From sequence record OR805294.1: a DNA stretch of 64,000 bases. The stretch is one strand, 5' to 3'. The notes beneath the pieces were generated by a model, which worked only from the letters and a program-made list of their open reading frames with translations, had not been told where the DNA came from and ran no database searches. Shown here in pieces: positions 3,147 through 60,857 of the stretch (the stretch's first letter is position 1; every line of letters begins with the position of its first letter). Made by a program: the position numbers and the translations under genes.

Positions 3147-4637
3147 TTGATTAATTATAACAGAACTGCTAAAAAAATATTTTCTGTATTAAAAGGGCAC
3201 AGCTATCGGGTAAAAATGTATGACCTAACAGGCAATGAAGTGATAGACCCGGAAAAAGCTCGTCGATTTTATGTTCAATATCCGAACATGATGATAACAC
3301 TAGATGAAGACACTGGTGAAATTCGTATGAGCAAAAACAATAATATTTCTTTAACTGAATACGAAAGCACATTAGTTCAGTTAAAGAACATAGCAGTGCA
3401 TTACATGCTAAATTTTACCTTGAAAGACTTCGGGAGAGAAATAACACCGAGGGATTTTGCATACCAAGCAAAAGTTAAAAAGGAAAAAGAAATGTCTAAC
3501 GGATCTGTATCTGAATCTATATCTCCTCTAGCTGGTTCTAGAAAAACAAGTTATCAAACAATAGAAAATGTTAAAATACATGTAAAGCATAAGACACATG
3601 TCGACGAAGAGATTAGGGGAGCTCGTTCTAGAAATATTTCTGCAATTTTTATAGAACACTCGGGAGAAAGGTTTCGTTTTCCTCACAATAATTTAGTTGG
3701 TGCCCGCGCCATGGCAAGACATATACAGCAAGGCGGTAATCAATACGATTCGATCGGTTCTTATATAATAGAAAGCTGTGCTAACTATACTAAGTTAAGA
3801 GAATTTATGAGATATATTCGTTCTAATAATCTTATAACAGAAGATAGCAACGATGTTATTGTTAATATTAAGGAAAGTATAGATAGTATAGCTACAGATT
3901 TAAAACGTCTATCCGGTGTAAATACTTACGGTATAGTAAAATCTAGGATCGAAGAAACGGAAGAAACAGAATGCGATGTATCTGATGTAGATAAGTTTAA
4001 GGATATGTTTACTATTCGTAAGTTTGACGATAAGTTTACTGATGTTCTTCCTATAGTGAGTAAACTCGTTAAGGAAAAACAATCATATTTAAAGAAAATA
4101 GAAGAAGCAGTTTCTAAACAAATTTATATAGAGTCTATGCCTATTTTAGAAACTAATGCTATAATATATGAAAATCCTAATATTAAGTTAGGACATAGCT
4201 TACAAGAACTTAGTTCTAGAATATTAGAAAATACATTATTAGCTAATTATATTTCGTCGATGGGATCTAAGCTAATAAAAGAAAATACTTTAAATAAATT
4301 CGAATGTTCTATAATCAAATCATTTTTTGAAAACGTTAGTGTTAAAAAAGCAAATACTAATCAAACTAATGGGTTATTTGCAGAATCGATCAACGAATTT
4401 GGAATAAATATTCCTGACTTCCCGGATAATAACCCCTTTAATAAAAATAAAGACAACAAATACAGTAATTCAGATTTAGATAAACACGCATCTGATCAAA
4501 AAGTAGATGCAAATGACACTGTCTCTAAAATTGATTTTATTATAAGCAATAGCCACGGAAGATATAATGACAGAGAAAAATTACTAAAATTGCCAGATGA
4601 TGTTATTAACAGAATATATTCCAAAATTGCTAAATAA
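3147..4637 (+). CDS. Conserved hypothetical phage protein
   Basis: 496-aa ORF, TTG start with SD GAGGT, AATAAATA at 3114. Confidence 0.7.
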   Translation: MINYNRTAKKIFSVLKGHSYRVKMYDLTGNEVIDPEKARRFYVQYPNMMITLDEDTGEIRMSKNNNISLTEYESTLVQLKNIAVHYMLNFTLKDFGREITPRDFAYQAKVKKEKEMSNGSVSESISPLAGSRKTSYQTIENVKIHVKHKTHVDEEIRGARSRNISAIFIEHSGERFRFPHNNLVGARAMARHIQQGGNQYDSIGSYIIESCANYTKLREFMRYIRSNNLITEDSNDVIVNIKESIDSIATDLKRLSGVNTYGIVKSRIEETEETECDVSDVDKFKDMFTIRKFDDKFTDVLPIVSKLVKEKQSYLKKIEEAVSKQIYIESMPILETNAIIYENPNIKLGHSLQELSSRILENTLLANYISSMGSKLIKENTLNKFECSIIKSFFENVSVKKANTNQTNGLFAESINEFGINIPDFPDNNPFNKNKDNKYSNSDLDKHASDQKVDANDTVSKIDFIISNSHGRYNDREKLLKLPDDVINRIYSKIAK

Positions 4638-4717: not shown

Positions 4718-4746
4718 TTGACAAATAGATAACTGCATTATATAAT
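4718..4746 (+). promoter_or_regulatory. Consensus sigma70 promoter of ssb
   Basis: TTGACA-17 bp-TATAAT. Confidence 0.9.
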
Positions 4747-7663: not shown

Positions 7664-8047
7664 ATGGAATACATCGAAAAGGAAGTAACAGTTAGTGAAC
7701 TGAAGTCTCTCTACAGTAGTAATGAATACGAAATTGAGTTAGACACACCAGATGGCTGGCAAAAACTGGGATCTTGGTTCGATAAAGGCCCTCTTAGTAT
7801 GGTGACGGTAGAAACGCAGGATGGGTTAGTTACTAGATGTGCAGTAAACCATATGATCGAAGTGGTAGACGGATCGGAAACTTTTTGGACACTTGCAAAA
7901 GACTTGTACGAAGGCCAACAAGTGCTTACTGTAAACGGTGTCTCAACAATTAGTTCTGTAACTGAAAGTGGCATCGAAGAATGTTTCGATTTCGAAATAC
8001 TCCACGAAAATCATCGTTACTATGGTGATGGATTCTCTTCTCACAAT
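7664..8047 (+). mobile_element. Split intein C-fragment (IntC, 128 aa)
   Basis: TPDG, block B-like CAVNH, block F CFDFEI, terminal His-Asn followed by Ser+1. Confidence 0.9.
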
Positions 8048-8935
8048 AGTGGCAAATCGTATATAGTATCAGGAAACATTGTAAAAGATGCACAAGAAAA
8101 GGGAATTTTTGTTGTATTACTTGATTCAGAAAATGCACTCGACGAATCTTGGCTACATGCACTAGGTGTAGACACTGGACCGGAAAAAATGTTACGCATC
8201 TCTGTATCGATGATAGATGATGTAGCAAAAATTATTAGTGATTTTGTTAAAGATTACAAGACTAATTATGCCGAACTACCTAACAATGATCGACCAAAGG
8301 TGCTTTTTGTTATTGACTCGCTCGGAATGTTATTGACACCAACGGAAACTGCACAATTTCAAAATGGTGATATGAAAGGAGATATGGGCAGGAAAGCAAA
8401 ACAATTAAAAGCATTGATTTCTAACTGTACAAATATGTTCGGCAACTTAGACATAGGCCTTGTTTGTACTAACCATACATATGCATCTCAAGATTTATTT
8501 CAGCCCGACGCTGTAATTTCGGGTGGCAGCGGCGCAGTCTATGCCGCGTCAATTGTAGTGGCAATGCAAAAGTTAAAGTTAAAAGAAGACGAAGCAGGTA
8601 ATAAAATTTCTGAAGTAGCTGGTATTCGTGCAGTATGTAAAGTTGTGAAATCTCGATATGCAAAGCCGTTTGAGACAGTAAAAGTAAATATTCCATATGA
8701 TACAGGTATGAGTCCGATATCGGGTCTATTTGACTTGTTTGAAAAAACAGGTAAACTTGTAAAACAAGGCAATAGATACAAGTACATAACCAAAGATGGT
8801 ACCGAAATGCTGTATTATAGGAAAGAATGGAATGATTACGATAAACTAAAAGTAATTATGAATGAATTTACAGACGAAGACCTAGGCAATGTCGTAGAAG
8901 TGGAAGAGGGTCATTTAGAAGAGTTCGATGAATAA
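7664..8935 (+). CDS. uvsX: C-intein (128 aa) fused to UvsX/RecA C-terminal fragment (295 aa)
   Basis: After SHN the sequence resumes SGKS (rest of Walker A), then LDSENALD, Walker B VIDSLG, CTNHTY, SGG, KSRY. Confidence 0.93.
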   Translation: MEYIEKEVTVSELKSLYSSNEYEIELDTPDGWQKLGSWFDKGPLSMVTVETQDGLVTRCAVNHMIEVVDGSETFWTLAKDLYEGQQVLTVNGVSTISSVTESGIEECFDFEILHENHRYYGDGFSSHNSGKSYIVSGNIVKDAQEKGIFVVLLDSENALDESWLHALGVDTGPEKMLRISVSMIDDVAKIISDFVKDYKTNYAELPNNDRPKVLFVIDSLGMLLTPTETAQFQNGDMKGDMGRKAKQLKALISNCTNMFGNLDIGLVCTNHTYASQDLFQPDAVISGGSGAVYAASIVVAMQKLKLKEDEAGNKISEVAGIRAVCKVVKSRYAKPFETVKVNIPYDTGMSPISGLFDLFEKTGKLVKQGNRYKYITKDGTEMLYYRKEWNDYDKLKVIMNEFTDEDLGNVVEVEEGHLEEFDE

Positions 8936-10763
8936 ATTATGCGAAACAGATCGTATTAATATTATCAAATTACACTTCGATGATTTAAAATCTGTATCTG
9001 AATTAAAGAAAATATATGGAGTCTCTTATGATGTCATTAAAACCATCATAAGAGATGAAACGAATCGTCTGCCGTTGCAAGAAACTGATATAAAAATTTT
9101 GAAATTTAAAAAACTTGTTTCAAAGGAGTTGTTATTTGAATTACATGTAATTAAAAAACAATCATTTAATGAAATAAGAAAAACTTATAAGATTAATGAA
9201 CTTCATTTAAAACAAGTGTTTAATGATTACGGAATACCAATTGAAAAGTGTTTATATACTGCTACTAACAAGAAGCGTAAAACAAAAAAGCCTGAAGATT
9301 TTACTAAAGACTTTTTCGAACACTTAGTATATAACGAAAGACGAACAATTAGTTGGATAAAAAATAATTATAACTTTAATTTTGAAGAACTAAAACATCA
9401 TTTAACACATTTAAAAATCGATTATACTAATTCGTTGCCACCTGCTGTAAAACATCAACAAGATAAAATATCTAGAGAAACTCTAGCAGAAGAATTAAAA
9501 ATTAAATCTATTGTTGATATAATAAATGAATACGGAATTTCTAGAACTTATGTAGAAAGCGTTATAAAAGAATACAATATACAGTATTTTACAAAACCGA
9601 AACATTCTATATTAAGTGGTAAAGAATCAGAAATTTATCGGATGTATTATGATGAATGTATGACTACATACCAAATAGCAGAAAAATTGGGAGTATGTCA
9701 ATACACCATATGGAAAATAATGGCAGATAACGGATGGAAAACACGAGAACCGATTAAAAAAATTGATTTGATTTGGAATGATATAAAAGAAGAAGTTGTT
9801 AAATTAATAGACAACGGTTATACATTATCTGCTTTATGTGAAAAATACGAAATAACATCTATTACTGAAAAGTTAATAGAAGAAGGTATAAAATATACAA
9901 AGGGAAATATTTCTTCTGGTCATGCAGAAATATCTGAATATGTGCGTTCATTGGGATTTAATGTAATCGACAATGATCGTACTATTATATTTCCGCGAGA
10001 AATTGATATTTTTATTCCCGAACTTAACATAGGAATAGAATACAACGGATTATATTTTCATAGCACACGAACAGAAGGAAATGTAACAAAGCATAGAGAA
10101 AAATATAGCATATGTAAACAAAAAGGTATTCGTTTAATACAAATTTTTGAAGATGAATTTATTCATAAGAAAGAACTAGTAAAGAGAAAATTAGCGCACA
10201 TTTTAGGAAAATCTAATAATAAATGTTATGCAAGGAATTGTATAGTTAAAGAAATATCGGTAGCAGACAAACGAAATTTCTTTAAAAAATATCACATACA
10301 AGAAGATTCTGCATCCTCGTATGCATATGGATTATATTATGATAATGAATTAGTTTGTGCTATGTCTTTTCTTAAAAAGAAGAAATGTACAGAACTAGTT
10401 AGATATGCATCTTCTATGCACGTGATCGGCGGATTTTCTAAGTTGTTGAAATATTGTATTAATAATAACAAAATAGATGTTATAAACACATATGCTGATC
10501 TCAGATGGTCGAATCCGACAAATAATGTATATGTAAACAATGGGTTTGATATACTGTATGAGACTGATTTTAATTACACTTATGTGAGTAAAGAGGATTT
10601 TTCAAAAAGGCTTAATAGGCAAAAATTTATGAAACACAAGTTGAAAAACATTTTATCAGATTTCGACAAATCATTAACAGAAGAAGAGAATATGAAAAAT
10701 AATGGATTTTATCGAGTATACGATGCTGGCCATTTAAAATTGCAATATAAGGTTAATAAATGA
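8928..10763 (+). mobile_element. Hef-like free-standing putative homing endonuclease with N-terminal helical repeats
   Basis: EIDIFIPELNIGIEYNGLYFHS...IRLIQIFEDE nuclease motif followed by YARNC...ELVRYAS...YADLRWS...YDAG domain. Confidence 0.75.
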
Positions 10764-11736: not shown

Positions 11737-13188
11737 ATGGCAAAGGATTGCAAATTAGTAATAAAAGATGAAGTAAATATTGCATTTACTGGACTTGATA
11801 TAAACACTCGTAGAAAACTATCTGATTCGTTAAAATTCTTTTTACCTCATGCAAGACACCAACCTGCATACAAGTTAGGTAGATGGGATGGATGTATTAG
11901 ATATTGTGATATAGCCGGACGTTCGTATCTTAATTTTTTAGATATACTTATTCCTATTGTAGAAAATAGTGGTTATTATATAACCATAGAAGATAATAGA
12001 CAACCGTTTTCGTGTAATTTTGAACCAATAGATGCTAACTCATATTCTCATATTACTTGGCCTGTAGGACATCAATATGAAGGGCAGAATATTGTTCTAC
12101 GGGATTATCAAGTAGAGGCAGTGAATAATTACTTAGCTAATACACAGAGTATAGCAACATTGCCTACTGGTTTTGGAAAAACATTAGTTACTGCTGCATT
12201 AGCACATAAAGTAGAAAAGTATGGAAGAACAATAACAATTGTTCCATCTAAAGACTTAGTTACCCAAACGGAACGGGATTTTAAAAACTTCGGATTAGAT
12301 ACTGGCGTTTATTTCGGAGATAGAAAAGAATTAGGCAAAACCCACACTATAGTTACCTGGCAAAGTATTGAAGCTATTTATAAACAAAGTAAAGCAGACG
12401 AAAATGCATTGACATTAGAAAAATTCATTGAAGGGGTAGTAGCAGTAGTAGTCGATGAAGCACATACCATTAAGGGTCAATCATTAAAAGAACATTTAAC
12501 TTCTACATTTGCTAATGTTCCTATTCGATGGGCTATGACAGGAACCATACCGGAAGAGGAACATGCCGCCGCCGCCCTCATTGCATGCATAGGTCCTGTT
12601 ACAAAAACTGTGAAAGCAAAAGAATTGCAAGAAGCAGGAATACTTAGTGAGTTGCATATAGAAGTCCTACAATTAAACGATTATCATACTTCACATCCGA
12701 ACTATGCAGCCGAATTAAAATTTCTTACTACAGACCCTACTCGTTTAAAATGGCTAGCCGAACATATAAAATCTCAAGAAGGTAATACGTTAGTGTTAGT
12801 TGATAGGCTGTCAAGCGGAGAAGAACTTCTTAAGCATATACCAGATGCTGCTTTTGTTAAAGGTGATTTAAAAAGTAAAGACAGAAGAACTGAATATAAA
12901 TCAGTTACATCAGATACAGATAAAATTATTATAGCAACCTTTGGGGTTGCATCTACTGGTATTGATATACCATACATACATAATGTATATTTATTAGAAC
13001 CAGGAAAGTCTTTTATTAGGGTAATTCAGTCTATCGGTCGCGGTCTACGCAAGGCACCCGGAAAAGACTATGTATCTGTATTTGATATTACTTCTGTTGC
13101 AAAATATTCTGCAAGGCATTTAACTAAAAGGAAAAAATTCTATAAAGAAGCAGAATATCCATTTTCTGTGAAAAAAATAGATTATTAA
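11737..13188 (+). CDS. uvsW: UvsW-like SF2 DNA helicase
   Basis: LRDYQ, LPTGFGKT, VDEAH, MTGT, STGIDIP, QSIGRGLR. Confidence 0.92.
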   Translation: MAKDCKLVIKDEVNIAFTGLDINTRRKLSDSLKFFLPHARHQPAYKLGRWDGCIRYCDIAGRSYLNFLDILIPIVENSGYYITIEDNRQPFSCNFEPIDANSYSHITWPVGHQYEGQNIVLRDYQVEAVNNYLANTQSIATLPTGFGKTLVTAALAHKVEKYGRTITIVPSKDLVTQTERDFKNFGLDTGVYFGDRKELGKTHTIVTWQSIEAIYKQSKADENALTLEKFIEGVVAVVVDEAHTIKGQSLKEHLTSTFANVPIRWAMTGTIPEEEHAAAALIACIGPVTKTVKAKELQEAGILSELHIEVLQLNDYHTSHPNYAAELKFLTTDPTRLKWLAEHIKSQEGNTLVLVDRLSSGEELLKHIPDAAFVKGDLKSKDRRTEYKSVTSDTDKIIIATFGVASTGIDIPYIHNVYLLEPGKSFIRVIQSIGRGLRKAPGKDYVSVFDITSVAKYSARHLTKRKKFYKEAEYPFSVKKIDY

Positions 13189-13189
13189 T

Positions 13190-13441
13190 ATGAATTTTTA
13201 TCAAGACGGAATTTATATAAAATTAGATGCAGATTTAAATGAACAATCGAACTTATTTAAATTAAAATCAGAATTATATGTACATTCGTATCCTACCCCT
13301 GATTTTTATAGATATATAAAAAATGGTAAAACCATGTTAGGGGTAGTATATGTCGGTTCATTAGAAACTGTATTTCTTAATATTATTAGCGGAGACTTTG
13401 ACAAAGAAAAATTTTGTGCTATAATAGAAAAATACAAATAA
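13190..13441 (+). CDS. Hypothetical protein
   Basis: 83-aa ORF in operon. Confidence 0.55.
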   Translation: MNFYQDGIYIKLDADLNEQSNLFKLKSELYVHSYPTPDFYRYIKNGKTMLGVVYVGSLETVFLNIISGDFDKEKFCAIIEKYK

Positions 13442-13451
13442 AGGTGTAATT

Positions 13452-13955
13452 TTGAAAATTTTATTAACCGAAAATGAATCATACGAATTAGATAGAGTCC
13501 CGGACGACATAGAGGATATACGGTATTGTATATTAGATTGTAATGATAAATCTAATGTAGATTTTTACTTTTTGCCTCTTATATTTTTAGAAAGTTTTTA
13601 TTCTCCCGCAGTTGTACTCAAGATAGGAAAGTACAGTATACAAATGCCCTTAGATTGGTCTATACTAGTATGCGACGAAGAATATTCTGATTTGGAAGTA
13701 GTACCACTTACTAGTCTAAATGACAGGGGGTTTCATACAATAGTATTTAATCCACTAAAACACATGGTGCCTGTTCCTTCTGAAATAACAATAACTAGTG
13801 TATTTACTGAAGTAAAGTGGTATTTCCCTAAATTAAAAAGTGGTGCTGTCCTAGTTATTCCTTTAGAAGACGGACCTAATCCGAATTGTGCATTGTTTGT
13901 AAAAGAAGGGAATAAAATTCCTGATCCTATAGATATCGCAGAGTTATTTAAATAA
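13452..13955 (+). CDS. Conserved hypothetical protein
   Basis: 167-aa ORF, TTG start with SD AAGGTG. Confidence 0.65.
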   Translation: MKILLTENESYELDRVPDDIEDIRYCILDCNDKSNVDFYFLPLIFLESFYSPAVVLKIGKYSIQMPLDWSILVCDEEYSDLEVVPLTSLNDRGFHTIVFNPLKHMVPVPSEITITSVFTEVKWYFPKLKSGAVLVIPLEDGPNPNCALFVKEGNKIPDPIDIAELFK

Positions 13956-14422
13956 TGGCAGAAGAAAGCATTTTACCGCTTTGGATGGAATTGCAAGCAT
14001 TAGATTATAATGATAGAGATTTTTATGACAAGTTAACCAATGAACAGAAGAAAGTATTTTCATCGTGGATTATAATGAGATATTCTAGTAATATAATCGG
14101 TGATAATGCAGATTGGGGTCTTATAATGACCAATGATATTGTAAATGTGGATTTTTCATTAATGTACAAGCATCCTAAATTGCAATGGATGCTATTGTCG
14201 TTGTGTGGAACTGGAAGAAAAGAACAACGTAAATGGATTGCTCCAAATAAAAAGAAAAAAAAGAATCCGAGGAAAGAATTTATTTTTAAAATTCATCCAA
14301 ACGCAAAAGATGATGAAATCGATATGCTTGCAGATTTGTACACTGATGCAGAATTAAAGGATATTATGTTATCCTACGGTTATGAAGATAAAGAAATAAA
14401 AGATATTTTAAAGAAGAAATAA
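13955..14422 (+). CDS. Putative clamp-loader small subunit (T4 gp62-like)
   Basis: Size, FSSWIIMRYSS and HPKLQW...KW motifs, replication context. Confidence 0.5.
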   Translation: MAEESILPLWMELQALDYNDRDFYDKLTNEQKKVFSSWIIMRYSSNIIGDNADWGLIMTNDIVNVDFSLMYKHPKLQWMLLSLCGTGRKEQRKWIAPNKKKKKNPRKEFIFKIHPNAKDDEIDMLADLYTDAELKDIMLSYGYEDKEIKDILKKK

Positions 14423-14435
14423 TTCTAGTAAGTAT

Positions 14436-15143
14436 ATGCAAGCATCTAAGAAAAATAAAAAGGCAACATCGATGGCAAAGTGCGAGTTTTGTAGTAAAGA
14501 ATTTAAGTCAGAACGAACAATAGCTGCTCATTTGTGTGTTAAAAAGAAGAGGTTTGCAGAAAAAGACACAGTCGGGTCTAGACTGGGATTTAGGGTATTT
14601 CAGCGATTCTACGAACTAACTACTTCTTCTAAAACACCTAAATCTTTTAGAGAATTTATTGATAGTAAATTTTATATAGATTTTGTTAAATTTGGAAGAC
14701 ACCTAATAGATATTAATCCTATTAACACAGATGAATACATAGATTTCATAATAAAGAACGCTATACCGCTGTCTGATTGGAAAAAAGACTATGTATATGT
14801 AAGATATCTTAAAGAATATACTCAGAAAGAACCTGCACAAAAAGCACTAGAACGAACTATAATCGAGATGGGCACTTGGTGTACTGAAAATAATGTAGAT
14901 ATTGTAGATTTTTTTGAAAAAGTTAATACAGTAGAGGCAGTATATCTTATTAAATCAGGAAAGCTTAGTCCGTGGGTGTTATATCTGGCATCTTCTTCTG
15001 ATAAATTGTGGGTTAGAATAAATGAAGAACAAGAAAAATTTATTCAAACTGCTGTAGATTTTGACTGGTGGCAAAAGAAATTTATTGCAAATAAGGATGA
15101 TGTTGACTTTATAGTGTCTGTATTGACAGAGGCTAAGTTGTAA
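14436..15143 (+). CDS. Hypothetical protein with N-terminal zinc-finger-like motif
   Basis: CEFCSKEFKSERTIAAHLC. Confidence 0.65.
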   Translation: MQASKKNKKATSMAKCEFCSKEFKSERTIAAHLCVKKKRFAEKDTVGSRLGFRVFQRFYELTTSSKTPKSFREFIDSKFYIDFVKFGRHLIDINPINTDEYIDFIIKNAIPLSDWKKDYVYVRYLKEYTQKEPAQKALERTIIEMGTWCTENNVDIVDFFEKVNTVEAVYLIKSGKLSPWVLYLASSSDKLWVRINEEQEKFIQTAVDFDWWQKKFIANKDDVDFIVSVLTEAKL

Positions 15144-15144: not shown

Positions 15145-15747
15145 ATGGCAAAAGTAGTTACTGATGTTGATATTGACGTAGCAGATAGGTTAACAGTTTT
15201 GTCTGGACTACAACATATATCTGCTAAATTAGACGGAGTAGGAAAGAAACATTTATCTGGTGTATATTTTCAACCCATTCCGTTTGATCCGGAACAAAAC
15301 ATGAGCAACATAGATTATAAAGTTGCAGAAGAATTAGGCTACATGAAGATTGATCTTCTTAACGTGAGTATATACGAACAAGTTAGATCAGAGGAACATC
15401 TAAAGAAATTAATAGATAAAGAACCCAACTGGTCTTATTTTGAACATAAACAGATAGTTCAAAATTTATTTCATTTAGGAAATTATGCTGATCTAGCAGT
15501 AGGAATGAAACCGAAAAGTGTAGAACAGTTAGCAATGTTGCTGGCTGTTATACGTCCGAGTAAGTATCATTTACAATATAAACCTTGGGATATTATTGCC
15601 AAAACTGTGTGGGATAAGCCCAGCGACGGGTCATATCATTTTAAAAAAGCACATGCCATTAGTTATGCACTTGCAATTGTTGTTCAGTTGAATTTATTAG
15701 AAGAAGAAGCAGAACAAGAACCCGATCCATTTAAGTTATTTTCCTGA
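15145..15747 (+). CDS. dnaE: Minimal DnaE (Pol III alpha)-like polymerase, catalytic half
   Basis: DVDID, KHLSGVYF, KIDLLN, LAVIRP and FKKAHAISYA match DnaE PDFDVDF, HAGGVVI, KFDFLG, VALFRP and FNKSHSAAY. Confidence 0.85.
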   Translation: MAKVVTDVDIDVADRLTVLSGLQHISAKLDGVGKKHLSGVYFQPIPFDPEQNMSNIDYKVAEELGYMKIDLLNVSIYEQVRSEEHLKKLIDKEPNWSYFEHKQIVQNLFHLGNYADLAVGMKPKSVEQLAMLLAVIRPSKYHLQYKPWDIIAKTVWDKPSDGSYHFKKAHAISYALAIVVQLNLLEEEAEQEPDPFKLFS

Positions 15748-16129
15748 TTAAAGATACTTGTCGTCTTTTTATTCTCTTTTTGAGCATATTGTTAAGAGAA
15801 GTACATGGTCCGAAAACTATTTTTATATCTTTGTTTACTAGGGTTTTTAGGCAATATCTAAATTCTGCCATTTCGTTTGGCATGAATATATTTATTGGTA
15901 ATATCCTAGAAGATTCCCACCACCAACAGTCACCGCATTGAAGAAATATATCTTTGTGTTGACTGTTTTTTAATGATTTAAAATCATAAAAACTTATATA
16001 TTTGTCATCCGAATTTTGAATAATTCCTATATAGAAATTTTCTAAGTGTTGTATGCCACTCAAAAATGGAAATTTTTCAGATAATTCTGCTAACTCTTGA
16101 TCTATTGTATTATTATTTGTGTTGTCCAT
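15731..16129 (-). CDS. Conserved hypothetical protein
   Basis: 132-aa ORF, AATAAATA on - strand at 16149-16156. Confidence 0.65.
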   Translation of the reverse strand: MDNTNNNTIDQELAELSEKFPFLSGIQHLENFYIGIIQNSDDKYISFYDFKSLKNSQHKDIFLQCGDCWWWESSRILPINIFMPNEMAEFRYCLKTLVNKDIKIVFGPCTSLNNMLKKRIKRRQVSLIRKIT

Positions 16130-16191: not shown

Positions 16192-17061
16192 ATGACATTC
16201 CATACATTATATAAATATGATAATTTTGTAGAACTGTTATATGATAACGGTATACTTTCTTGCAATTGTAAATTATTGGATAATAGACCTATGCATTCAC
16301 AAACAATAAAACTATACAAAGGTGTAGATAATCAAGTAAAATTTAGGGTTTATAATCCTGATAGACGATTAGTAAATATTCATGGACTTTCTGTGTTTGC
16401 TAGTTTAATTAATACAGAAAATAAAGAACGAGTGCTAGTAAAACAGTGTGATATATATGAGCAGTCTCCTGGCATTTTTGTATTGTCTATATTAGAAGGA
16501 GATCTAATAAATGTGCCTAATGGATATTACACTTTAAGTATAATAGGACAAGAAGAATTTATTCCCGGCATATCTAATATAGATGGACTCCCTGTAATTA
16601 GTACGCCGTTTTATACAAATACATCATCTGATATACAACTGTATGCAGAAGTTAGAGATAGCTTAGAAAAGGCGCCCATAGACACTATAGTTGCTACTGA
16701 ATGGCGAAAAGTAATAAACACTGATTATACTTTTAATTATTACAATGCAGGTCCATTTCCATCTAATAGAGTAAAAAATTATAGATCGGGTGTGCATACT
16801 ATTGCAATATATGCAGAAAATTTCACAGGTAAATTTGAAGTATATGGTACATTAGACCAAATTCCTTCGCTAGAAGACGAATTTAGTTCTTGGTTTCCGA
16901 TTAATTTAAGATCTATGTTTGATTATATTCAATTTAATAATTTCACTGGAATAATGCCATATACTTTTCAAGCAAATGTTCTTTGGTTAAAATTCCGTTG
17001 GTATCCGGATTCGACAATCCCAAACAATGGAGAAATTTCTAAAGTAATGTTAAGAAGTTAA
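16192..17061 (+). CDS. Hypothetical late (probably virion) protein
   Basis: 289-aa beta-rich ORF, TATAAATA at 16179-16186. Confidence 0.6.
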   Translation: MTFHTLYKYDNFVELLYDNGILSCNCKLLDNRPMHSQTIKLYKGVDNQVKFRVYNPDRRLVNIHGLSVFASLINTENKERVLVKQCDIYEQSPGIFVLSILEGDLINVPNGYYTLSIIGQEEFIPGISNIDGLPVISTPFYTNTSSDIQLYAEVRDSLEKAPIDTIVATEWRKVINTDYTFNYYNAGPFPSNRVKNYRSGVHTIAIYAENFTGKFEVYGTLDQIPSLEDEFSSWFPINLRSMFDYIQFNNFTGIMPYTFQANVLWLKFRWYPDSTIPNNGEISKVMLRS

Positions 17062-17090
17062 TTGACAACGAAAAACGTACATGCTATAAT
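17062..17090 (+). promoter_or_regulatory. Consensus sigma70 promoter of primase-helicase
   Basis: TTGACA-17 bp-TATAAT. Confidence 0.9.
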
Positions 17091-18120: not shown

Positions 18121-19560
18121 GTGAAACAAAACAAAGACGTAGTAAAGGATTATAATACTGGCGTAGAAGATTTGTTTATAAAATTTTTCTTAACTGACCC
18201 AGAATTGTTTATTAGATGCCGATCTATAATACAACGAGACCACTATTCGGATAAGATTAACCAAAAAGTTATAGATTTTCTAAATGAGCATGCAGATAAA
18301 CATAGTACTCTTCCTACTGTAGAACAAGTATCGGCCATAACAGGAAAATCATTTGAGCTATTAGATAACATACACGATAGCCATAAAAATTGGTTTTTAG
18401 AAGAATACGAAACATTTGCTAGGCATAAACAACTAGAGAATGTAATATTAGAGTCTCCTGATTTATTAGTTACCGGCAGGTACGGAGAAGTTGAACAAAA
18501 AGTTAAGAATGCAGTTTCTATTGCATTAGTTAAAGATTTAGGTACTGATTATTTTGGAGATCCACTGTCCAGACTTAATGCCATTAAAGACAGAAAATCG
18601 TTAGTGTCAACTGGCATGAAAGATTTAGATGCAAAACTGTACGGTGGTTTTGAGCGCGGAGCTCTAAATATTTTTGCAGGACAATCAGGTGCCGGCAAAT
18701 CTATATTCCTACAAAATATAGGATTAAATTGGGCTATAGCAGGACTTAACGTAGTTTACCTTAGTTTAGAATTAAGCGAAAACTTATGTTCTATGCGCAT
18801 AGATTCTATGAACACAGGCATTGATACAAAAGAAGTTTTACGCAGGGTAGATGACGTAGCTATAAAAGTTATTGAATCTAAAAAGAAAACTAAAGGCTCC
18901 CTTCGAATTAAGCAATTGCCTAACGGTTGTACAGCCAACGATATACGTTCTTATATAAAAGAATACGAAATTCAAACAGGATTAAAAGTAGATGCAATAA
19001 TGTTAGACTATTTGGATTTGTGTATGCCTATAAGTAAAAAGGTAAGTCCATCGGATCTGTTTGTTAAAGACAAATACGTTTCTGAAGAATTAAGGAACTT
19101 AGCAGTCGAGCTTCAAATTCTATTAGTCACTGCATCGCAGTTAAACAGAAATTCACACGAATCTGTAGATTTCGGACATGAACACATTTCTGGAGGTATT
19201 TCTAAGATTAATACTGCCGATAACGTAATAGCTATTTTTACAACGCAAGCTATGAGAGAAAATGGAAGATATCAAATTCAATTTCTTAAAACACGTTCGT
19301 CGTCGGGTGTCGGGCAGAAAGTAGATCTTGCGTTTGATCAAAGAACACTAAGATTATCTGATTTAGATCCAGAACAAGCTAGCGCATTATCTGAGAATAC
19401 AAGGAGTGTTATTGATAAACTCCGCGCAGATAGGTCATTAGACACACCTAATAATAAAGATACTCATGTACAAAAGACACCTGTTATTGAACAAAAACCG
19501 GCAGAATCTATGGTAGAAAAAAGTGCCCGGCTTCGTAATCTACTTAGCGGCAACAGATAA
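18121..19560 (+). CDS. Replicative DNA helicase (gp41/DnaB-like)
   Basis: GQSGAGKS, LSLELSE, MLDYLD, TASQLNR, LKTRSS. Confidence 0.92.
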   Translation: MKQNKDVVKDYNTGVEDLFIKFFLTDPELFIRCRSIIQRDHYSDKINQKVIDFLNEHADKHSTLPTVEQVSAITGKSFELLDNIHDSHKNWFLEEYETFARHKQLENVILESPDLLVTGRYGEVEQKVKNAVSIALVKDLGTDYFGDPLSRLNAIKDRKSLVSTGMKDLDAKLYGGFERGALNIFAGQSGAGKSIFLQNIGLNWAIAGLNVVYLSLELSENLCSMRIDSMNTGIDTKEVLRRVDDVAIKVIESKKKTKGSLRIKQLPNGCTANDIRSYIKEYEIQTGLKVDAIMLDYLDLCMPISKKVSPSDLFVKDKYVSEELRNLAVELQILLVTASQLNRNSHESVDFGHEHISGGISKINTADNVIAIFTTQAMRENGRYQIQFLKTRSSSGVGQKVDLAFDQRTLRLSDLDPEQASALSENTRSVIDKLRADRSLDTPNNKDTHVQKTPVIEQKPAESMVEKSARLRNLLSGNR

Positions 19561-39655: not shown

Positions 39656-40345
39656 GTGTCGTTAAACAAAACTAAAACTGATGCCGAACTAGGCAAAAAA
39701 GTACAGCAATATTTAATCCAACAAGGAGTAGAAACTCCTATGCAAGAGCAGACTCTAAACGTTAAAGAGCGGATAGATAAAATTGAATCTCATTTTGTTG
39801 AAATTATGAATGCACTTGCGTTGGATCTTTCTGACGATAGTCTTGCAGAAACGCCTCGCCGAGTAGCAAAAATGTATGTATCTGAGATATTCTATGGGTT
39901 GGATTATGAGGCATTTCCTAAATGCACTACTATTGAAAATAAATTTAATGCAAATGAAATGGTCTTAGTAAAAGATATAGATTTATATTCTCAGTGCGAA
40001 CATCATATTTTACCAATAATTTCTGGATCATCTTCCGGTAGAGGTGGAATATCGGTTGCTTATATTCCTAAAAATAAAGTAATAGGTCTCTCTAAATTAA
40101 ATAGAGTGGCAGAATTTTTCTGCAAGCGACCTCAAGTTCAAGAACGACTCACATTGCAAATATTTCATGCATTACGGTATATTCTGGAAACAGACGATGT
40201 TGCTGTTTTGATTAACGGAAGGCATCTGTGTGTGGAATCTAGGGGCGTAGAAGATACAAGTTCGAGTACGATAACTTCTAAATTAAGTGGTGCATTTAGC
40301 AACGATCCTGCCACCCGTGCAGAATTTATGTCTCTTGTAAAATAA
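39656..40345 (+). CDS. folE: GTP cyclohydrolase I
   Basis: ETPRRVAKMY, CEHH, GLSKLNR, QVQERLT, HLCVESRGV; GTG start with SD AGGAGG. Confidence 0.95.
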   Translation: MSLNKTKTDAELGKKVQQYLIQQGVETPMQEQTLNVKERIDKIESHFVEIMNALALDLSDDSLAETPRRVAKMYVSEIFYGLDYEAFPKCTTIENKFNANEMVLVKDIDLYSQCEHHILPIISGSSSGRGGISVAYIPKNKVIGLSKLNRVAEFFCKRPQVQERLTLQIFHALRYILETDDVAVLINGRHLCVESRGVEDTSSSTITSKLSGAFSNDPATRAEFMSLVK

Positions 40346-40349
40346 CAAA

Positions 40350-40382
40350 AACTACTATGGATAGATACTATCCATAGTAGTT
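40350..40382 (+). repeat. 15-bp inverted repeat between folE and queD
   Basis: AACTACTATGGATAG-ATA-CTATCCATAGTAGTT. Confidence 0.7.
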
Positions 40383-40412
40383 ACACATAGCATATTAATA
40401 AGGAATATAAAA

Positions 40413-40931
40413 TTGTGGCAGATTAATAAAAGTTTCAGTTTTGCATATGCTCACAGAGTCCATAATCAACACTTAGATGCAGATTTAGTTGAAGACACCA
40501 AATGCAAATGCAGGCATTTACACGGACATACAGGTAAAGTAGTTATTCATTTAACTGGAACTTCTTTAGTAAACGGTATGGTAACTGATTTTAAGCATTT
40601 AGGTTTTCTTAAAAAATTTATAGATGACGTAATCGACCATAAGTTTATTATAGATGCAAACGATCCTAATTTTAGTAAGATAACCAATGCATCTAAATAT
40701 TCTACTATAAGTTTTGAGCACTATGGAATATTCGATACGTCTGAAGAAACAGTAGAACACGAAAAGGAACATGCAGATAGTTTTGTAATAGTAGATTTTG
40801 TTCCTACTGCAGAAAATTTAGCTAAATGGATTTGGGAATATGCTGAAAGCATTTTAGAACAAAAAGGTATAACTGTTTCTAAAGTAGAATGGTGGGAAAC
40901 TGATAAAGCTTGTGCAACATATATTGCATAA
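40413..40931 (+). CDS. queD: 6-carboxytetrahydropterin synthase (QueD/PTPS)
   Basis: AHR, CRHLHGH, IDHKF, PTAENLA, WET. Confidence 0.9.
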   Translation: MWQINKSFSFAYAHRVHNQHLDADLVEDTKCKCRHLHGHTGKVVIHLTGTSLVNGMVTDFKHLGFLKKFIDDVIDHKFIIDANDPNFSKITNASKYSTISFEHYGIFDTSEETVEHEKEHADSFVIVDFVPTAENLAKWIWEYAESILEQKGITVSKVEWWETDKACATYIA

Positions 40932-40948
40932 TATAAAGGTAGATATAA

Positions 40949-42175
40949 ATGTCGAAAGAAACATGCTCTTATTGCAATAAAGGCAAAGATGATGTGTCTA
41001 AGTTGTTTCGTAGCCCTGCTAAATATGGATCAAATGTATATATATGTGACCAGTGTGTAACTCAGTGCAACAATTTTTTAGAAACTGCTGAAACAAATGA
41101 TCGGGAATCTAATAAATTAGAAATAAAATACACACCTGAAGAACTAAAGGAATTGCTAGATAAAGACATTGTAGGGCAAGATCACGCAAAAGAATTACTA
41201 AGTCTAGCAGTGTATAATCATTATAAACGGGTAAACTATAACACTACTGAACATGATGTAGAGTTATCTAAATCTAACATAATGCTACTGGGACCTTCAG
41301 GCAGCGGTAAGACATTTTTAATATCTAGTATATCTAAATTGTTAAACATACCTTTTGTTTCTGTAGATTCTACTTCGCTAACAGAGGCAGGATATGTCGG
41401 CGATCATGTAGAGACTATATTTACTAGATTAATCGCAGAAGCAAATGGTGACATAGAACTAGCGCAACGTGGAATCGTATTTATAGATGAAATAGATAAG
41501 AAACGTTCTAAAAAAGGAACAAATTCTGCAGGATCTGATGTTTCCGGCGAAGGTGTCCAACAGTCTTTACTTCGGGTGCTAGAAGGAACAACAATTAAGT
41601 TAGAACTAAATTCTAACAGTATGTTTAGTCCTAGACAGGAAATTATGTTTGACACAACTAACGTTTTGTTTATAGTTGGCGGCGCATTTATAGGATTAGA
41701 TGCAGTAATAAATAAAAGACTTAGTTCTACTAAATCTCAAATGGGATTTGGTTCCGAAGCTGGTAAACCCATAGAAGGTAGTTTATTCTATGTAGAACCG
41801 GAAGATTTGTATACATACGGTTTTATAAGAGAATTTGTGGGGAGATTTCCTGTTCTTATTGCGTTTCATGATGTAACAGAGACTATGCTTCGTCGAATTC
41901 TAGTAGAGCCTAAAAGTTCTATACTTAAACAATATCAAACTATGTTTAAATTAGATAACATTGAATTAGAATTCGATGAAGATTTTATAAAATCTGTTGC
42001 TACTACAGCGTTTAATAGGAAAACAGGCGCACGTGGTTTAAGAACTATTTTAGAAAAAGAACTATCTAGTATAGCATATAGATTGCCTTCTATAAGACGA
42101 GAAGGGTTTAGCAAGATTATTATACACGAACTAGGAAAACATAATTTCATAAAAGGGCAAAATGAAGACATTTAA
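40949..42175 (+). CDS. clpX: ClpX AAA+ unfoldase
   Basis: C4 zinc domain CSYC...ICDQC, GPSGSGKT, EAGYVG, FIDEID, DVSGEGVQQSLL, MGF loop, TGARGLR. Confidence 0.96.
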   Translation: MSKETCSYCNKGKDDVSKLFRSPAKYGSNVYICDQCVTQCNNFLETAETNDRESNKLEIKYTPEELKELLDKDIVGQDHAKELLSLAVYNHYKRVNYNTTEHDVELSKSNIMLLGPSGSGKTFLISSISKLLNIPFVSVDSTSLTEAGYVGDHVETIFTRLIAEANGDIELAQRGIVFIDEIDKKRSKKGTNSAGSDVSGEGVQQSLLRVLEGTTIKLELNSNSMFSPRQEIMFDTTNVLFIVGGAFIGLDAVINKRLSSTKSQMGFGSEAGKPIEGSLFYVEPEDLYTYGFIREFVGRFPVLIAFHDVTETMLRRILVEPKSSILKQYQTMFKLDNIELEFDEDFIKSVATTAFNRKTGARGLRTILEKELSSIAYRLPSIRREGFSKIIIHELGKHNFIKGQNEDI

Positions 42176-42368
42176 TATAATTACTGGTCTTACTGTAGAA
42201 GTAAGACACGATAACTTTAACCAAGCACTTAGAACTTTTACTAAAAAGGTTCAAAATTCAGGAAAATTAAAAGAAGTTCGAGAACGCGAATTCTATGAAA
42301 AGCCTTCTGTAAAAAAGACAAAAGCTAAAAAAGCAGCAATTCAACGCCAGAAAAAGAAAAAAATATAA
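42162..42368 (+). CDS. rpsU: Ribosomal protein bS21
   Basis: VEVR..NFNQALRTF.KK...RE.EFYEKPS..K..K.AA. Confidence 0.88.
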   Translation: MKTFNIITGLTVEVRHDNFNQALRTFTKKVQNSGKLKEVREREFYEKPSVKKTKAKKAAIQRQKKKKI

Positions 42369-42370
42369 TA

Positions 42371-42706
42371 ATGGATCTTTGCAGAATTTTAAATAATGAA
42401 CTTATGTTTTGCAGAAATCGTAGGAATAAACTCTATTATAGCATCCGGCAATTGAATAACGTTGACATTCCTGTAGATCCTGCAGATTCTTTACTTATTT
42501 TCAGCATAAAAAAGGATATAGAACAGCTCCAATCTTATAAAGATGTTATATCCGAATGCAGCAGACTTGAACAACGTATAATCTGTATAGATAAAACTGT
42601 GCAGCATATCCGTCGGTATTGCAACCACGAATTTGTGTATCACAATACTAATTATCATACAAATACAGATGCAGAAAAATGCATTTATTGCGGATTAATA
42701 ATTTAA
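42371..42706 (+). CDS. Hypothetical protein with C-terminal Cys/His cluster
   Basis: CNHEF...CIYCG. Confidence 0.55.
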   Translation: MDLCRILNNELMFCRNRRNKLYYSIRQLNNVDIPVDPADSLLIFSIKKDIEQLQSYKDVISECSRLEQRIICIDKTVQHIRRYCNHEFVYHNTNYHTNTDAEKCIYCGLII

Positions 42707-42707
42707 T

Positions 42708-43178
42708 ATGGCATATTTTTCGACTAAGAGATTTGGACCTATTTCCACCGGTCATCGTCAATGGAAAGATACGGGTCATTGCAGCAGAATACACGGCTAC
42801 GGAAGAACAGTGAAGATTATTTTTTCTGCTACTACATTAGATGATAAAATGTGGGTAGTAGATTTTGGTGGATTAAAAGATTTTAGGAAATGGCTTGAAG
42901 AACAATGGGATCATAATGTTTTAGTTGCATCTGACGATCCCAAGTTAAATATACTTAAACAAATGGAACAAGAAGGTCTAGTTAAATTAAATATAATGGA
43001 TGTTAAAAAAGGTCATGGTCCTGGGATAGAAGGTTCATGTAAGCATTTGTTTGACTATTTAAATCCTATTATAGAAAAGCATTCTGGCGGAAGATGTTGG
43101 GTCCATAGTATAGAAATATGGGAACACGAAAACAATTCCGCTATATATGAAACGTATAAGTCAACATTTAAAAGATAA
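42708..43178 (+). CDS. Second, divergent QueD/PTPS-family protein
   Basis: GHRQW, CSRIHGY, VDFGGLK, WDH, WEHENNSA. Confidence 0.85.
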   Translation: MAYFSTKRFGPISTGHRQWKDTGHCSRIHGYGRTVKIIFSATTLDDKMWVVDFGGLKDFRKWLEEQWDHNVLVASDDPKLNILKQMEQEGLVKLNIMDVKKGHGPGIEGSCKHLFDYLNPIIEKHSGGRCWVHSIEIWEHENNSAIYETYKSTFKR

Positions 43179-57672: not shown

Positions 57673-57712
57673 AAAAGGGCACTTGACAAGTGCCCTTTTT
57701 TTGCCATATAAT
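57673..57712 (+). terminator. Intrinsic terminator with overlapping sigma70 promoter
   Basis: Stem AAAAGGGCACTT/AAGTGCCCTTTT; TTGACA spans the loop (57683-57688); TATAAT at 57707. Confidence 0.8.
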
Positions 57713-59242: not shown

Positions 59243-59584
59243 ATGCAAAAAAAATCTAACAATGGCGTATTAGTAGATATGGATTCACTCCGTATTCAAA
59301 ATGAAAATGTAGTTGCAGTAGGAAACATGAATGTTAACGCAAAAGGCGACAAGTTGGGTCCAGGCGGCGAAATTATAGAAACTGCCGCCGAGCGAGTTCA
59401 CAGATACCATTCTGAACATCAAACAGAAACTGCAACAGCTTCTATCAAACCCAATCTAGATGAAGAAGATGAGCACGAAGAAGTAGTACAACCTAAAAAA
59501 GTTACAAAAGAAAAACGTAAGAAAGAAATTATAGATGACGAAGGGAACATTACTATAACAGAAGATAGTAATAAAGATATTTAA
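59243..59584 (+). CDS. Conserved hypothetical protein
   Basis: AVGNMNVNAKGD.LGPGG motif; SD AGGAG. Confidence 0.65.
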   Translation: MQKKSNNGVLVDMDSLRIQNENVVAVGNMNVNAKGDKLGPGGEIIETAAERVHRYHSEHQTETATASIKPNLDEEDEHEEVVQPKKVTKEKRKKEIIDDEGNITITEDSNKDI

Positions 59585-59586
59585 AA

Positions 59587-59913: not shown

Positions 59914-59926
59914 GGCATAATATCTA

Positions 59927-60856: not shown

Positions 60857-60857
60857 T

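Follow-up and report, generated by a model that had tools for sequence, protein, structure and literature searches.

A split minimal DNA polymerase III α in Pseudomonas phage Ettore: two distant genes for the putative subunits of one C-family nucleotidyltransferase

Two genes that lie far apart in the genome of Pseudomonas phage Ettore raise the question of whether two separately encoded chains form a single polymerase, and of what such an enzyme would do in a phage with a replicase of its own. The DNA analysed here, referred to as the window, is a stretch of 64,000 nt that is identical to nt 1–64000 of Ettore, a phage of the PA5oct group (family Arenbergviridae) with a genome of 287,740 bp. 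Both open reading frames are on the + strand and have the boundaries and lengths that an earlier note on this DNA gave them: the C half (15145–15747, 200 aa, ETTORE_0017, PA5oct gp220) starts with MAKVVTDVDID, and the N half (58721–59230, 169 aa, ETTORE_0087, PA5oct gp288) has the C-terminal end ...GRGSSVASYVLFLIGVHKVDSLKYNLDIKEFLK. The earlier note read them as an intein-less DnaE-type polymerase in two pieces, and they are indeed the N- and C-terminal parts of a C-family polymerase core, colinear with DnaE at the break. A split minimal Pol III α has been described in "group 2.2" jumbo phages by Iyer et al. (2021, Viruses 13:63, PMC7824862) as a phage-specific enzyme made of two proteins, the N-terminal one binding NTP and the C-terminal one Mg2+/template; they are encoded by distant genes alongside a family-B polymerase and lack the other Pol III domains. 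That paper views the minimal Pol III α as a model of the ancestral state, names PA5oct in a different section from the split polymerase, and notes a deazaguanine system in PA5oct. The Ettore halves are likewise separate, distant genes for an NTP-binding and a Mg/template-binding part, and the Rak2-related jumbo myovirus that has them also carries a family-B polymerase together with replication genes of T4 type. The Ettore pair is the same gene pair, with no difference in kind, and the in silico priority belongs to Iyer et al., who independently reached the same interpretation and made the same functional guess as the earlier note. The present check thus confirms an observation that was already known as a discovery and contributes three testable details. 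A natural fused form and a link to an exonuclease, both absent from the text of PMC7824862, are additions to the published description, and a nine-gene synteny is the third detail. A literature search found no bench experiment on any member of the split family.

The N half is recognized by standard profiles. It matches Pfam PF07733 (DNA_pol3_alpha) over profile positions 22–94 of 260 with E 4.3e-9, its score of 36.8 bits exceeding the cut-off of 23.9, also matches NCBIfam DnaE models and phrog_11127 (E 1.9e-45), and aligns without gaps to residues 322–392 of E. coli DnaE. Residues ~96–169 are the first part of the palm, and residues 1–95 are an extension specific to the family. The loop G137-R138-G139-S140 (59129–59140, + strand) corresponds in the DnaE alignment to R362-G363-S364 of E. 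coli; it is the nucleotide-binding G-S motif of Pol-β-like nucleotidyltransferases and is invariant in 51 homologues. The position of E. coli R390 is occupied by a near-invariant Glu (E166). Folded alone, the N half gives an AF2 model with a pLDDT of 87.7, for which Foldseek ranks 1–5 in the PDB are Pol III α or PolC (probability up to 0.98, E 2.3e-2).

The C half alone has no match in Pfam, NCBIfam or the PDB (phmmer), and it is tied to Pol III α through PHROGs, a family profile and fold comparison only. It matches phrog_11778, "DNA polymerase" (E 1.7e-63), and positions 579–679 of the 1190 positions of the DnaE-like phrog_405 (E 7e-7). A profile built from 50 C-half sequences matched only Pol III α chains in the PDB (E 0.012), in colinear pieces located at residues 413–424, 566–664 and 773–788 of M. 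tuberculosis DnaE1 and at residues 401–421, 595–641 and 753–767 of E. coli DnaE. The AF2 model of the C half folded alone has a pLDDT of 90.4, and Foldseek ranks 1–13 in the PDB are all Pol III α (probability up to 0.99, E 1.6e-3). The Foldseek TM-scores of both halves are low, which is expected for half-domains folded singly and makes the fold comparison weak evidence alone. Judged by its motifs, the C half is the remaining palm followed by cut-down fingers. D7-V-D9-I-D11 (15163–15177, + strand) corresponds to D401-F-D403-V-D405 of E. coli, in which the first two Asp are catalytic carboxylates, and K68-I-D70 (15346–15354, + strand) corresponds to K553-F-D555, with D70 as the third catalytic carboxylate; residues 553–555 of E. 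coli DnaE were checked and read KFD. D7, D9, D11, K68 and D70 are invariant in 50 homologues, and the claim that all three catalytic Asp are intact holds for D7, D9 and D70 and extends to the GS loop (50–51 homologues). The fingers are represented by two reduced motifs, R137-P138-x-K140 and F-K-K-x-H170; the RPxK and FKKxHxxxY motifs are specific to Pol III α fingers and are invariant.

The halves meet without gap or overlap, to within one residue in E. coli numbering. The stretch of DnaE quoted in the earlier note for this join is correct when compared with E. coli residues 356–410; L168/K169 of the N half correspond to L392/N393, and the equivalence of D7 and D401 places M1 of the C half at about residue 395. 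Together the halves have 369 aa, 32% of the 1160 aa of DnaE, which agrees with the earlier estimate of a third. DnaE and PolC have the same Pol-β-like palm, with the GS loop, DxD, KxD and the RPG and FNKSH motifs of the fingers arranged in the same order, but are single chains of 1000–1400 aa with PHP, thumb, full fingers, clamp-binding, OB and tau-binding parts, all of which the two-chain phage form lacks. Compared with E. coli DnaE, the DxD-to-KxD spacing in the C half is 61 residues versus 152, the RP-to-FxKxH spacing is 29 versus 117, and 34 residues versus 404 follow FxKxH; by these spacings ~90 residues of the thumb, ~88 of the fingers and 370 of the C terminus are absent. Without a thumb and with little of the fingers left, stable binding of a primer-template is not assured. 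The missing domains might have been encoded as further genes, and the search for them covered the 287,740-bp genome: no PHP, thumb, clamp-binding or OB part was found in the halves or elsewhere. E. coli DnaE, searched with phmmer --max against the 1455 ORFs of at least 50 aa, matched only the N half (residues 322–392), with E > 1.9 for all other ORFs, at a sensitivity limited by the single-sequence query. No further DnaE piece or paralogue was found by whole-genome phmmer and HMM scan, and the annotation of Ettore 100–287 kb contains no additional polymerase part and no annotated sliding clamp. PADLOC, applied to the two halves and to the immediate upstream neighbour of each, gave no defence or anti-defence match.

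The absence of inteins was also borne out, as a Pfam scan (E <= 1) revealed no intein domain in either half, while the same library, as a positive control, finds Intein_splicing in both parts of the family-B polymerase. At the break the N half ends in ...EFLK and the C half begins with MAKVVTD. The split dnaE of cyanobacteria (dnaE-n and dnaE-c of Synechocystis) is likewise encoded in two far-apart pieces, but these carry intein halves and are spliced to full-length DnaE, whereas the phage pair features no intein domain, is broken inside the palm at another site, and has a product in two chains. T4-like phages also have genes in pieces, such as the split gp43 of Aeh1-type phages and the split NrdA, where an essential replication enzyme is made as separate polypeptides that reassemble, and insertion of a mobile element may be the origin of the split there as here. 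The T4-like splits (gp43, NrdA and the family-B polymerase) are located beside an inserted element and occur in particular lineages only; in contrast, the Pol III α split spans tens to hundreds of kb, features no element at the ends, and is ancestral to the family in a midpoint-rooted tree.

Decaying fragments of a captured bacterial dnaE could in principle have the same appearance, as about a third of DnaE is left and the C half escapes Pfam and NCBIfam. This reading is refuted by the conservation data. There are 96 phage records with the C half and 92 with the N half, and their genus counts match closely, so that the co-occurrence in related jumbo phages that had been proposed as a check is observed; recurrence of the same split pair in about 92–96 phage genomes excludes chance, and both genes are intact in all ~92–96 isolate genomes that carry them. 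Metagenomic sequences add at least 1050 clusters of the C half (185–216 aa) and at least 5465 of the N half (169–182 aa). The break point is constant in all sampled homologues, where N halves end in ...EFL[KR] and C halves begin with M(x0-5)DxDxD, break point and lengths are the same across hundreds of 50%-identity clusters, and the catalytic residues are invariant. Instead of the relaxed selection that decay would produce, purifying selection was found: the dN/dS between Rak2 and PBECO4 is 0.096 for the C half and 0.058 for the N half (0.06–0.10), at saturated dS. Cellular genomes are practically devoid of the mini family, which among 185,579 species genomes is found on 4 MAG contigs, all with the phage gene order. 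The distance between the halves varies: it amounts to 30 kb for Vibrio phage 2.275.O, 33.9 kb for Rak2, 43.6 kb for Ettore, 182 kb for Atu_ph07 and 224 kb for Phosso.

A rare natural fusion bears directly on whether the halves belong to one enzyme. The fused N-to-C proteins P0312, P0391 and P0392 (375–376 aa) were found on four contigs from four samples and carry the halves in DnaE order, joined via a linker of ~9 residues. The DnaE model TIGR00594 spans the junction, with residues 92–206 of P0312 matching model positions 302–417. The fused gene is located at the C-half locus and has a dN/dS of 0.13–0.34. In the C-half tree, for which only a midpoint root is available, the fused forms are one clade (support 100) inside a clade (support 98) with 8 genuinely split C halves. 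Fusion as the ancestral state was considered and rejected, since the midpoint-rooted tree nests the fusion among split forms and makes it derived; this nesting supports one shared enzyme. The fused form also lends itself to biochemical and structural work as a single chain. A different reading, in which the halves act separately and non-catalytically, for example as replisome-binding decoys or adaptors, and their common origin is mere history, would account for genes that lie 30–224 kb apart in different modules in every isolate examined and for the 95-residue family-specific extension of the N half. It is very improbable, as the metal ligands and GS loop, invariant in thousands of sequences, make sense only for catalysis, the genus-wise record counts of the halves match closely, and the in-frame fusion in DnaE order and the purifying selection point to joint function; moreover, the DnaE regions that bind beta, tau or epsilon are absent from the phage proteins.

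The preferred reading, to which we assign a probability of roughly two in three, is a single minimal C-family nucleotidyltransferase with one subunit from each gene and an active site across two polypeptides. The N half would supply the first strand and helices of the Pol-β-like palm with the GRGS triphosphate-binding loop, and the C half would supply the strands with the metal-binding carboxylates D7, D9 and D70 and with K68, followed by the reduced fingers. Because the break is inside the catalytic fold, between the G-S loop and the DxD strand, neither half is expected to be active alone, and association would have to be non-covalent. We infer a non-covalent heterodimer, which is backed by the fusion, the fixed split site, the matching genus counts and the purifying selection. 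Catalytic activity and templated DNA synthesis by the pair are probable, and an accessory, non-replicative role is plausible. The enzyme should be a short-patch, poorly processive polymerase, since the thumb, PHP, clamp-binding, OB and tau-binding parts are absent. It would act beside the family-B replicase within the replication and recombination machinery, and its likeliest jobs may be to extend primers or recombination intermediates or to fill gaps. T4 itself, to our knowledge, replicates without such an enzyme. If active, the pair, with about one third of the length of DnaE, would be smaller than any known C-family polymerase, and it would be one of the rare enzymes whose catalytic fold needs two separately encoded chains to come together. 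It would then mark the smallest core with which the bacterial replicase family can work and bear on the origin of that family, and it would mean that two unrelated polymerase families are in use side by side in a group of T4-related jumbo phages that is large and abundant.

The pair might instead be an active nucleotidyltransferase that is not a conventional templated DNA polymerase, such as a terminal transferase for end-tailing, a dedicated primer extender from which the family-B polymerase takes over, or a modified-nucleotide enzyme. Nucleotidyltransferase palms of the Pol-β type carry out many non-polymerase chemistries, and primer extension with a hand-over is known for B. subtilis DnaE, which passes primers to PolC, and for Pol α in eukaryotes. 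The missing thumb, the reduction of the fingers to a small part, the Glu at the position of E. coli R390, and the constant location of the C half two genes upstream of the primase and helicase are consistent with such an activity. For a modified-nucleotide enzyme one can add the QueD, QueE and FolE-like genes of 7-deazaguanine synthesis at 39740–43178, but no neighbourhood link connects the split genes with these modification genes. The retained RPxK and FKKxHxxxY finger motifs point to primer-template handling, and a non-templated or otherwise unconventional enzyme is unlikely.

The family-B polymerase that was to be looked for elsewhere in the genome is present beyond the window, in two parts at Ettore 87802–90213 and 91889–93028 (87802–93028; Pfam DNA_pol_B_exo1 and DNA_pol_B). 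In the PA5oct-group phage this polymerase is itself split by an intein and an HNH gene (PMC6892783). The window additionally encodes a stand-alone DnaQ-family (ExoX / Pol III epsilon-like) DEDDh 3'-5' exonuclease at 50291–51064 on the + strand (PF00929, E 2.9e-17), which matches the NCBIfam models for ExoX (1.8e-30) and epsilon (8.5e-23), both under cut-off. The exonuclease occurs in 91 phage records with genus counts nearly equal to those of the split polymerase, and in Rak2-like and Vibrio phages its gene precedes the C half by 4.3–6 kb; in PA5oct it adjoins neither half, and the Xanthomonas and Agrobacterium members yielded no match at E <= 1e-10. The exonuclease is a possible proofreader in trans, as its distribution suggests a partnership with the split polymerase. 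In B. subtilis, DnaE is an accessory, primer-extending polymerase beside PolC. By analogy, the phage enzyme may be compared with it as a C-family polymerase without its own proofreading next to a main replicase; B. subtilis DnaE differs in that it is full-length and clamp-binding, and its partner replicase is also C-family.

Each half is located within a conserved replication module, and the T4-type replication genes reported alongside the pair are found within the window (SSB, UvsX, UvsW, primase, DnaB and clamp loader). The C half belongs to an array that runs from a UvsW helicase to primase and DnaB helicase, and the N half is located beside the clamp loader. The array starts with the annotated UvsW-type helicase (11737–13188, + strand), which is kept in position with 47–52% identity in Rak2, Atu_ph07 and four MAG contigs. 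Three conserved + strand genes follow upstream of the C half, at 13452–13955 (167 aa), 13955–14422 (155 aa) and 14436–15143 (235 aa), and their order is kept in the same genomes and contigs. They match phrog_11279, phrog_11758 and phrog_11058 and have no assignment in Pfam or NCBIfam; the third features a weak C2H2-like finger at its N terminus and its stop is one base before the C-half ATG. The three proteins are candidate accessory subunits. It is possible, if rather doubtful, that the halves join with the exonuclease, and perhaps with these three proteins, in a "mini Pol III core" of the phage, which would act as a specialised second polymerase in a replisome of mixed family-B/family-C type. 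Such a core would extend primers or intermediates of recombination and would be the smallest C-family polymerase that works, and we know of no virus with this division of labour.

The 3' end of the C half is overlapped by a conserved gene on the - strand (15731–16129, 132 aa), which keeps its position in every locus examined, the fused genes included. The downstream end of the array, on the + strand, consists of a virion protein (16192–17061), a DnaG-type primase (17091/17199–18119) and a DnaB/gp41-type helicase (18121–19560). The N half is followed on the + strand by genes at 59243–61806, of which the first (59243, 113 aa) precedes a GroES/gp31-like gene (59587–59913; Pfam Cpn10 and phrog matches), an RFC/gp44-type clamp loader (59927–60856) and the genes at 60858 and 61210, in an order that is kept in Rak2 and Atu_ph07. 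The gene order around the halves as a whole is conserved in PA5oct, Rak2, Atu_ph07 and the four MAG contigs.

A separate observation at the C-half locus concerns its tail, ...PDPFKLFS, a candidate clamp-binding tail that is kept as a lead only. Similar tails are found in the family-B polymerase (...HFDSLFGW) and in the ORF at 13452 (...IAELFK); 25 of the 1455 ORFs end in this way, and the tail is missing in Rak2, PBECO4 and most metagenomic C halves. Perfect matches to the sigma-70 consensus precede both operons and are predicted promoters on the basis of sequence. The match at 13398–13425 (TTGACA-16-TATAAT, + strand) precedes the run of 13452, 13955, 14436 and the C half, and that at 57683–57712 (+ strand) precedes the run of 57733, 58030 and the N half. 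The window contains 5 such perfect matches, all on the + strand, versus 0.15 expected, and they are also found before the SSB and primase genes. A further perfect candidate promoter is located within the N-half ORF itself (58812–58840). The PA5oct omics paper places the replication genes in middle/late transcription.

The genes for a proposed split minimal Pol III alpha in the Pseudomonas phage Ettore are real, and reading them this way agrees with Iyer et al. (2021, Viruses 13:63, PMC7824862). The predicted enzyme is unusual, though it was already described in 2021. Nucleotides 1-64000 of the Ettore genome (OR805294.1, 287,740 bp) match the window with 0 mismatches, and both ORFs described in the earlier note, the C half (15145-15747, +, 200 aa) and the N half (58721-59230, +, 169 aa), were confirmed there. 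That both halves are homologous to the Pol III alpha core is firmly established. The N half matches Pfam DNA_pol3_alpha with 36.8 bits (E 4.3e-9, above the threshold of 23.9) and ten NCBIfam DnaE models, and it aligns with E. coli DnaE 322-392 free of gaps. The C half has no match in Pfam, NCBIfam or single-sequence PDB searches; its PHROG family is phrog_11778 'DNA polymerase' (E 1.7e-63), and it also matches phrog_405 (DnaE-like, 1190 positions) at positions 579-679. The PDB matches of a C-half profile of 50 homologues are Pol III alpha chains only, in colinear pieces: the DxDxD..R motif (M. tuberculosis DnaE1 413-424, E. coli 401-421), the stretch from KxD to RPG (566-664 and 595-641) and the FNKSHxxxY helix (773-788 and 753-767). 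The E. coli DnaE sequence was taken from the K-12 genome, and the string quoted from it in the earlier note is correct. The DxDxD motif at D401/D403/D405 and KFD at 553-555 anchor the alignment and thereby place the end of the N half at the N393 equivalent and the beginning of the C half at ~395, so that the proposed joining without gap or overlap is seamless to within one residue.

The phage enzyme has 97 residues upstream of the aligned N-half start, compared with 321 in E. coli. The DxD to KxD interval, which spans the thumb, is 61 residues in the phage and 152 in E. coli, followed by 67 and 84 from KxD to RP, 29 and 117 from RP to FxKxH, and 34 and 404 from FxKxH to the C terminus. The thumb of E. 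coli DnaE was reportedly placed at 433-510 by Lamers et al. in 2006. The earlier note had considered that the missing DnaE domains might exist as other genes. A search of the complete genome with E. coli DnaE, run with all heuristics off and covering the 1455 stop-to-stop ORFs of 50 aa or more, gave the N half as the sole match (E 1.2e-4), all others having E > 1.9. The family HMMs of the N half and the C half each find one copy in the Ettore genome, and no further polymerase parts are listed in the deposited annotation.

Ettore is a jumbo myovirus (Arenbergviridae, genus Wroclawvirus, PA5oct group) with T4-type replication genes, of which the window is annotated with SSB, UvsX, a UvsW-type helicase, a DnaG-type primase, a DnaB/gp41-type helicase, ligase, ribonucleotide reductase and an RFC/gp44-type clamp loader. 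The family-B polymerase that was to be looked for elsewhere in the genome is present outside the window at 87802-93028, with its own exonuclease domain. It is encoded by two genes, 87802-90213 and 91889-93028, with a free-standing homing-endonuclease gene in between. Pfam finds Intein_splicing in both parts, as well as DNA_pol_B_exo1 and DNA_pol_B, and the MIJ3 paper agrees with an intein-split family-B polymerase. A Pfam scan found no intein domain in either half of the Pol III alpha, as the earlier note had held, though the family-B parts show one. Ettore thus carries two split polymerases, one by intein and one without any. Directly after the UvsX-like recombinase gene, and overlapping it by 8 bases, comes a gene for a 611-aa 'homing endonuclease' (7664-10763, +); the annotation has seven more homing-endonuclease genes in other parts of the genome. 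Iyer et al. (PMC7824862) proposed that the split enzyme may cooperate with the family-B enzyme in one-strand synthesis or repair.

AlphaFold2 with family alignments gave confident models of both halves, with pLDDT of 87.7 (N half) and 90.4 (C half). The C-half model features a five-stranded sheet (strands 8-12, 25-29, 34-41, 53-57 and 69-73) with DxD on the first strand and KID on the last, and a helical region thereafter. The N-half model is helical, and its WGVGRGSS segment (131-140) has no assigned secondary structure and is the 10-residue block of lowest confidence, with a mean pLDDT of 69. Such a segment would be consistent with a strand that depends on the other chain. The G-S loop and the DxD strand are parts of a single minimal fold in Pol-beta-type nucleotidyltransferases, and therefore the break falls inside the catalytic core. 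In Foldseek searches of the PDB, the 13 best matches of the C half are all Pol III alpha (probability up to 0.99, E from 1.6e-3) and the five best of the N half are Pol III alpha or PolC (probability up to 0.98, E 2.3e-2), with modest E-values and TM-scores for both.

The tblastn searches of phage records found the C half in 96 and the N half in 92 (E <= 1e-15 for the latter). The genus counts of the two halves match: Escherichia 34/33 (C/N), Pseudomonas 11/11, Klebsiella 11/10, Salmonella 8/8, Erwinia 8/8, Xanthomonas 4/4, Yersinia 4/4 and Agrobacterium 2/2. The halves are always far apart, at 30 to 224 kb. In a metagenome collection of 5.8 billion proteins the C half has at least 1050 clusters (185-216 aa) and the N half at least 5465 (169-182 aa), some of them on contigs of up to 355 kb, and an exhaustive profile search of 1.84 billion representatives gave 558 C-half clusters at 50% identity, almost all <=220 aa. 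The break point is identical throughout, with N halves ending in ...EFL[KR] and C halves opening with M(x0-5)DxDxD. The invariant residues are D7, D9, D11, R15, K68, D70, N73, R137, P138, K140, K167 and H170 in the C half and R100, E104, W134, G135, G137, R138, G139, S140, S144, Y145 and H153 in the N half. Decay of the genes, for which relaxed selection would be the sign, is ruled out by Nei-Gojobori dN/dS values of 0.096 (C half) and 0.058 (N half) between Rak2 and PBECO4, with dS saturated at ~2. A pattern-limited scan that took one genome from each of 185,579 bacterial and archaeal species yielded four loci, each on a MAG contig with phage gene order; the family is apparently restricted to phages. 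In GenBank, one or both genes already carry the label DNA polymerase (III alpha) in the records of Ettore, MIJ3, PAC2 and many Rak2-like phages. For the Atu_ph07 C half, gp074 (4001-4579 of the examined segment), RefSeq sets the start too far downstream, so the DxDxD motif is lost; the ORF extends upstream of it (…MKNIPDIDIDFYDRD…).

One match of the exhaustive search, P0312 (375 aa), features both parts in a single chain, with 44% identity to the N half at residues 80-180, 40% identity to the C half at 189-374 and the junction ...IKEFIK-DNKEGIYNIA-DFDID.... It has two relatives at 78-81% identity. The fused gene reads through without a break on four contigs, each from a different sample (G+C 25-27%), and it occupies the C-half locus, followed by homologues of the minus-strand gene 15731-16129 and of 16192-17061. 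The NCBIfam DnaE model spans the junction (residues 92-206 = model 302-417, 54 bits). Within the fused clade dN/dS is 0.17-0.25 overall, with the N part at 0.21-0.34 and the C part at 0.13-0.17. A tree of 129 C halves groups the fused sequences into a single clade (support 100) nested in a support-98 clade with eight genuinely split C halves that start with Met and DxDxD, and therefore, with the tree rooted by midpoint only, the fusion is secondary and of single origin. By the classic gene-fusion argument, the fused sequences suggest that both products function as one enzyme, in DnaE order. No mention of a fused form was found in Iyer et al. (PMC7824862), and no experimental study of the split polymerase was found in the literature. 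That the two products form one active enzyme has good indirect support and is likely; for the model as a whole, one minimal Pol III alpha-type enzyme from two predicted subunits, the confidence is 0.65. Two fused-gene contigs carry a C5 DNA methylase gene (PF00145; 940-1830 and 405-1295) directly upstream, overlapping the fused-gene start.

The C half is part of a deeply conserved array made up of the UvsW-type helicase, ORFs 13452 (167 aa), 13955 (155 aa) and 14436 (235 aa), the C half, minus-strand ORF 15731 (132 aa), the virion protein 16192, primase and the DnaB-type helicase, an order kept in Rak2, Atu_ph07 and four MAG contigs. In PA5oct, Rak2 and Atu_ph07, the genes on the 3' side of the N half are a 113-aa ORF, a GroES/gp31-like gene and the gp44-type clamp loader. 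ORF 14436-15143 (+), which stops one base short of the C-half start (TAA-T-ATG), encodes a conserved protein of 235 aa in which there is a weak C2H2-like zinc finger (CEFCSKEFKSERTIAAHLC). Its homologue is in the same place in 7/7 split-form relatives examined and is absent upstream of the fused genes. The window features five perfect sigma-70 consensus sequences (TTGACA-N16-18-TATAAT), all on the plus strand, vs 0.15 expected by shuffling. Four of them lie immediately in front of the SSB gene (4718-4746), the operon ending with the C half (13398-13425), the primase gene (17062-17090) and the operon containing the N half (57683-57712), and the fifth (58812-58840, TTGACA-17-TATAAT) is inside the N-half ORF at codons 31-40. 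This candidate promoter could drive the downstream 59243, GroES-like and clamp loader genes, and it could also give a shorter N-half product from M69, which is about where conservation with Rak2-like phages starts (residue 66). PA5oct relies on host RNA polymerase. Because promoter consensus sequences precede both operons and the host polymerase is used, both halves are plausibly expressed alongside the other replication genes. The PA5oct proteins gp220 (C half) and gp288 (N half) carry no virion-protein flag.

ORF 50291-51064 (+) encodes a stand-alone DnaQ-family DEDDh exonuclease (PF00929, E 2.9e-17), for which the closest NCBIfam models, ExoX and Pol III epsilon, are both under their cut-offs. 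It occurs in 91 phage records, with genus counts nearly equal to those of the split polymerase; members from Xanthomonas and Agrobacterium give no match at E <= 1e-10. In Rak2, K64-1, Muenster, KP13-7, ph0011 and Vibrio phage 2.275.O the gene shares the strand of the C half and lies 4.3-6 kb upstream of it, in Rak2 directly before uvsW; in PA5oct it adjoins neither half. A free exonuclease that travels with an exonuclease-less split polymerase is a possible proofreader, a link that is suggestive because the family-B polymerase already has an exonuclease domain.

The C-terminal tails of the family-B polymerase (...HFDSLFGW), the C half (...PDPFKLFS) and ORF 13452 (...PDPIDIAELFK) share an acidic or Pro-rich stretch followed by LF, which could be a clamp-binding tail. 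The ORF 13452 homologues end in ...IQDLHLGL (Rak2) and ...LPDTLDISQLV (Atu_ph07), and the LF tail of the C half is conserved in the PA5oct lineage only. The deposited annotation of 39740-43178 (+) includes GTP cyclohydrolase, two QueD-like genes and a ribosomal protein S21 homologue, and a QueE-like gene is located at Ettore 98648. The GTP cyclohydrolase, QueD-like and QueE-like genes fit the 7-deazaguanine DNA-modification system that PA5oct has according to Iyer et al. (PMC7824862), who name this phage in their DNA-modification section.
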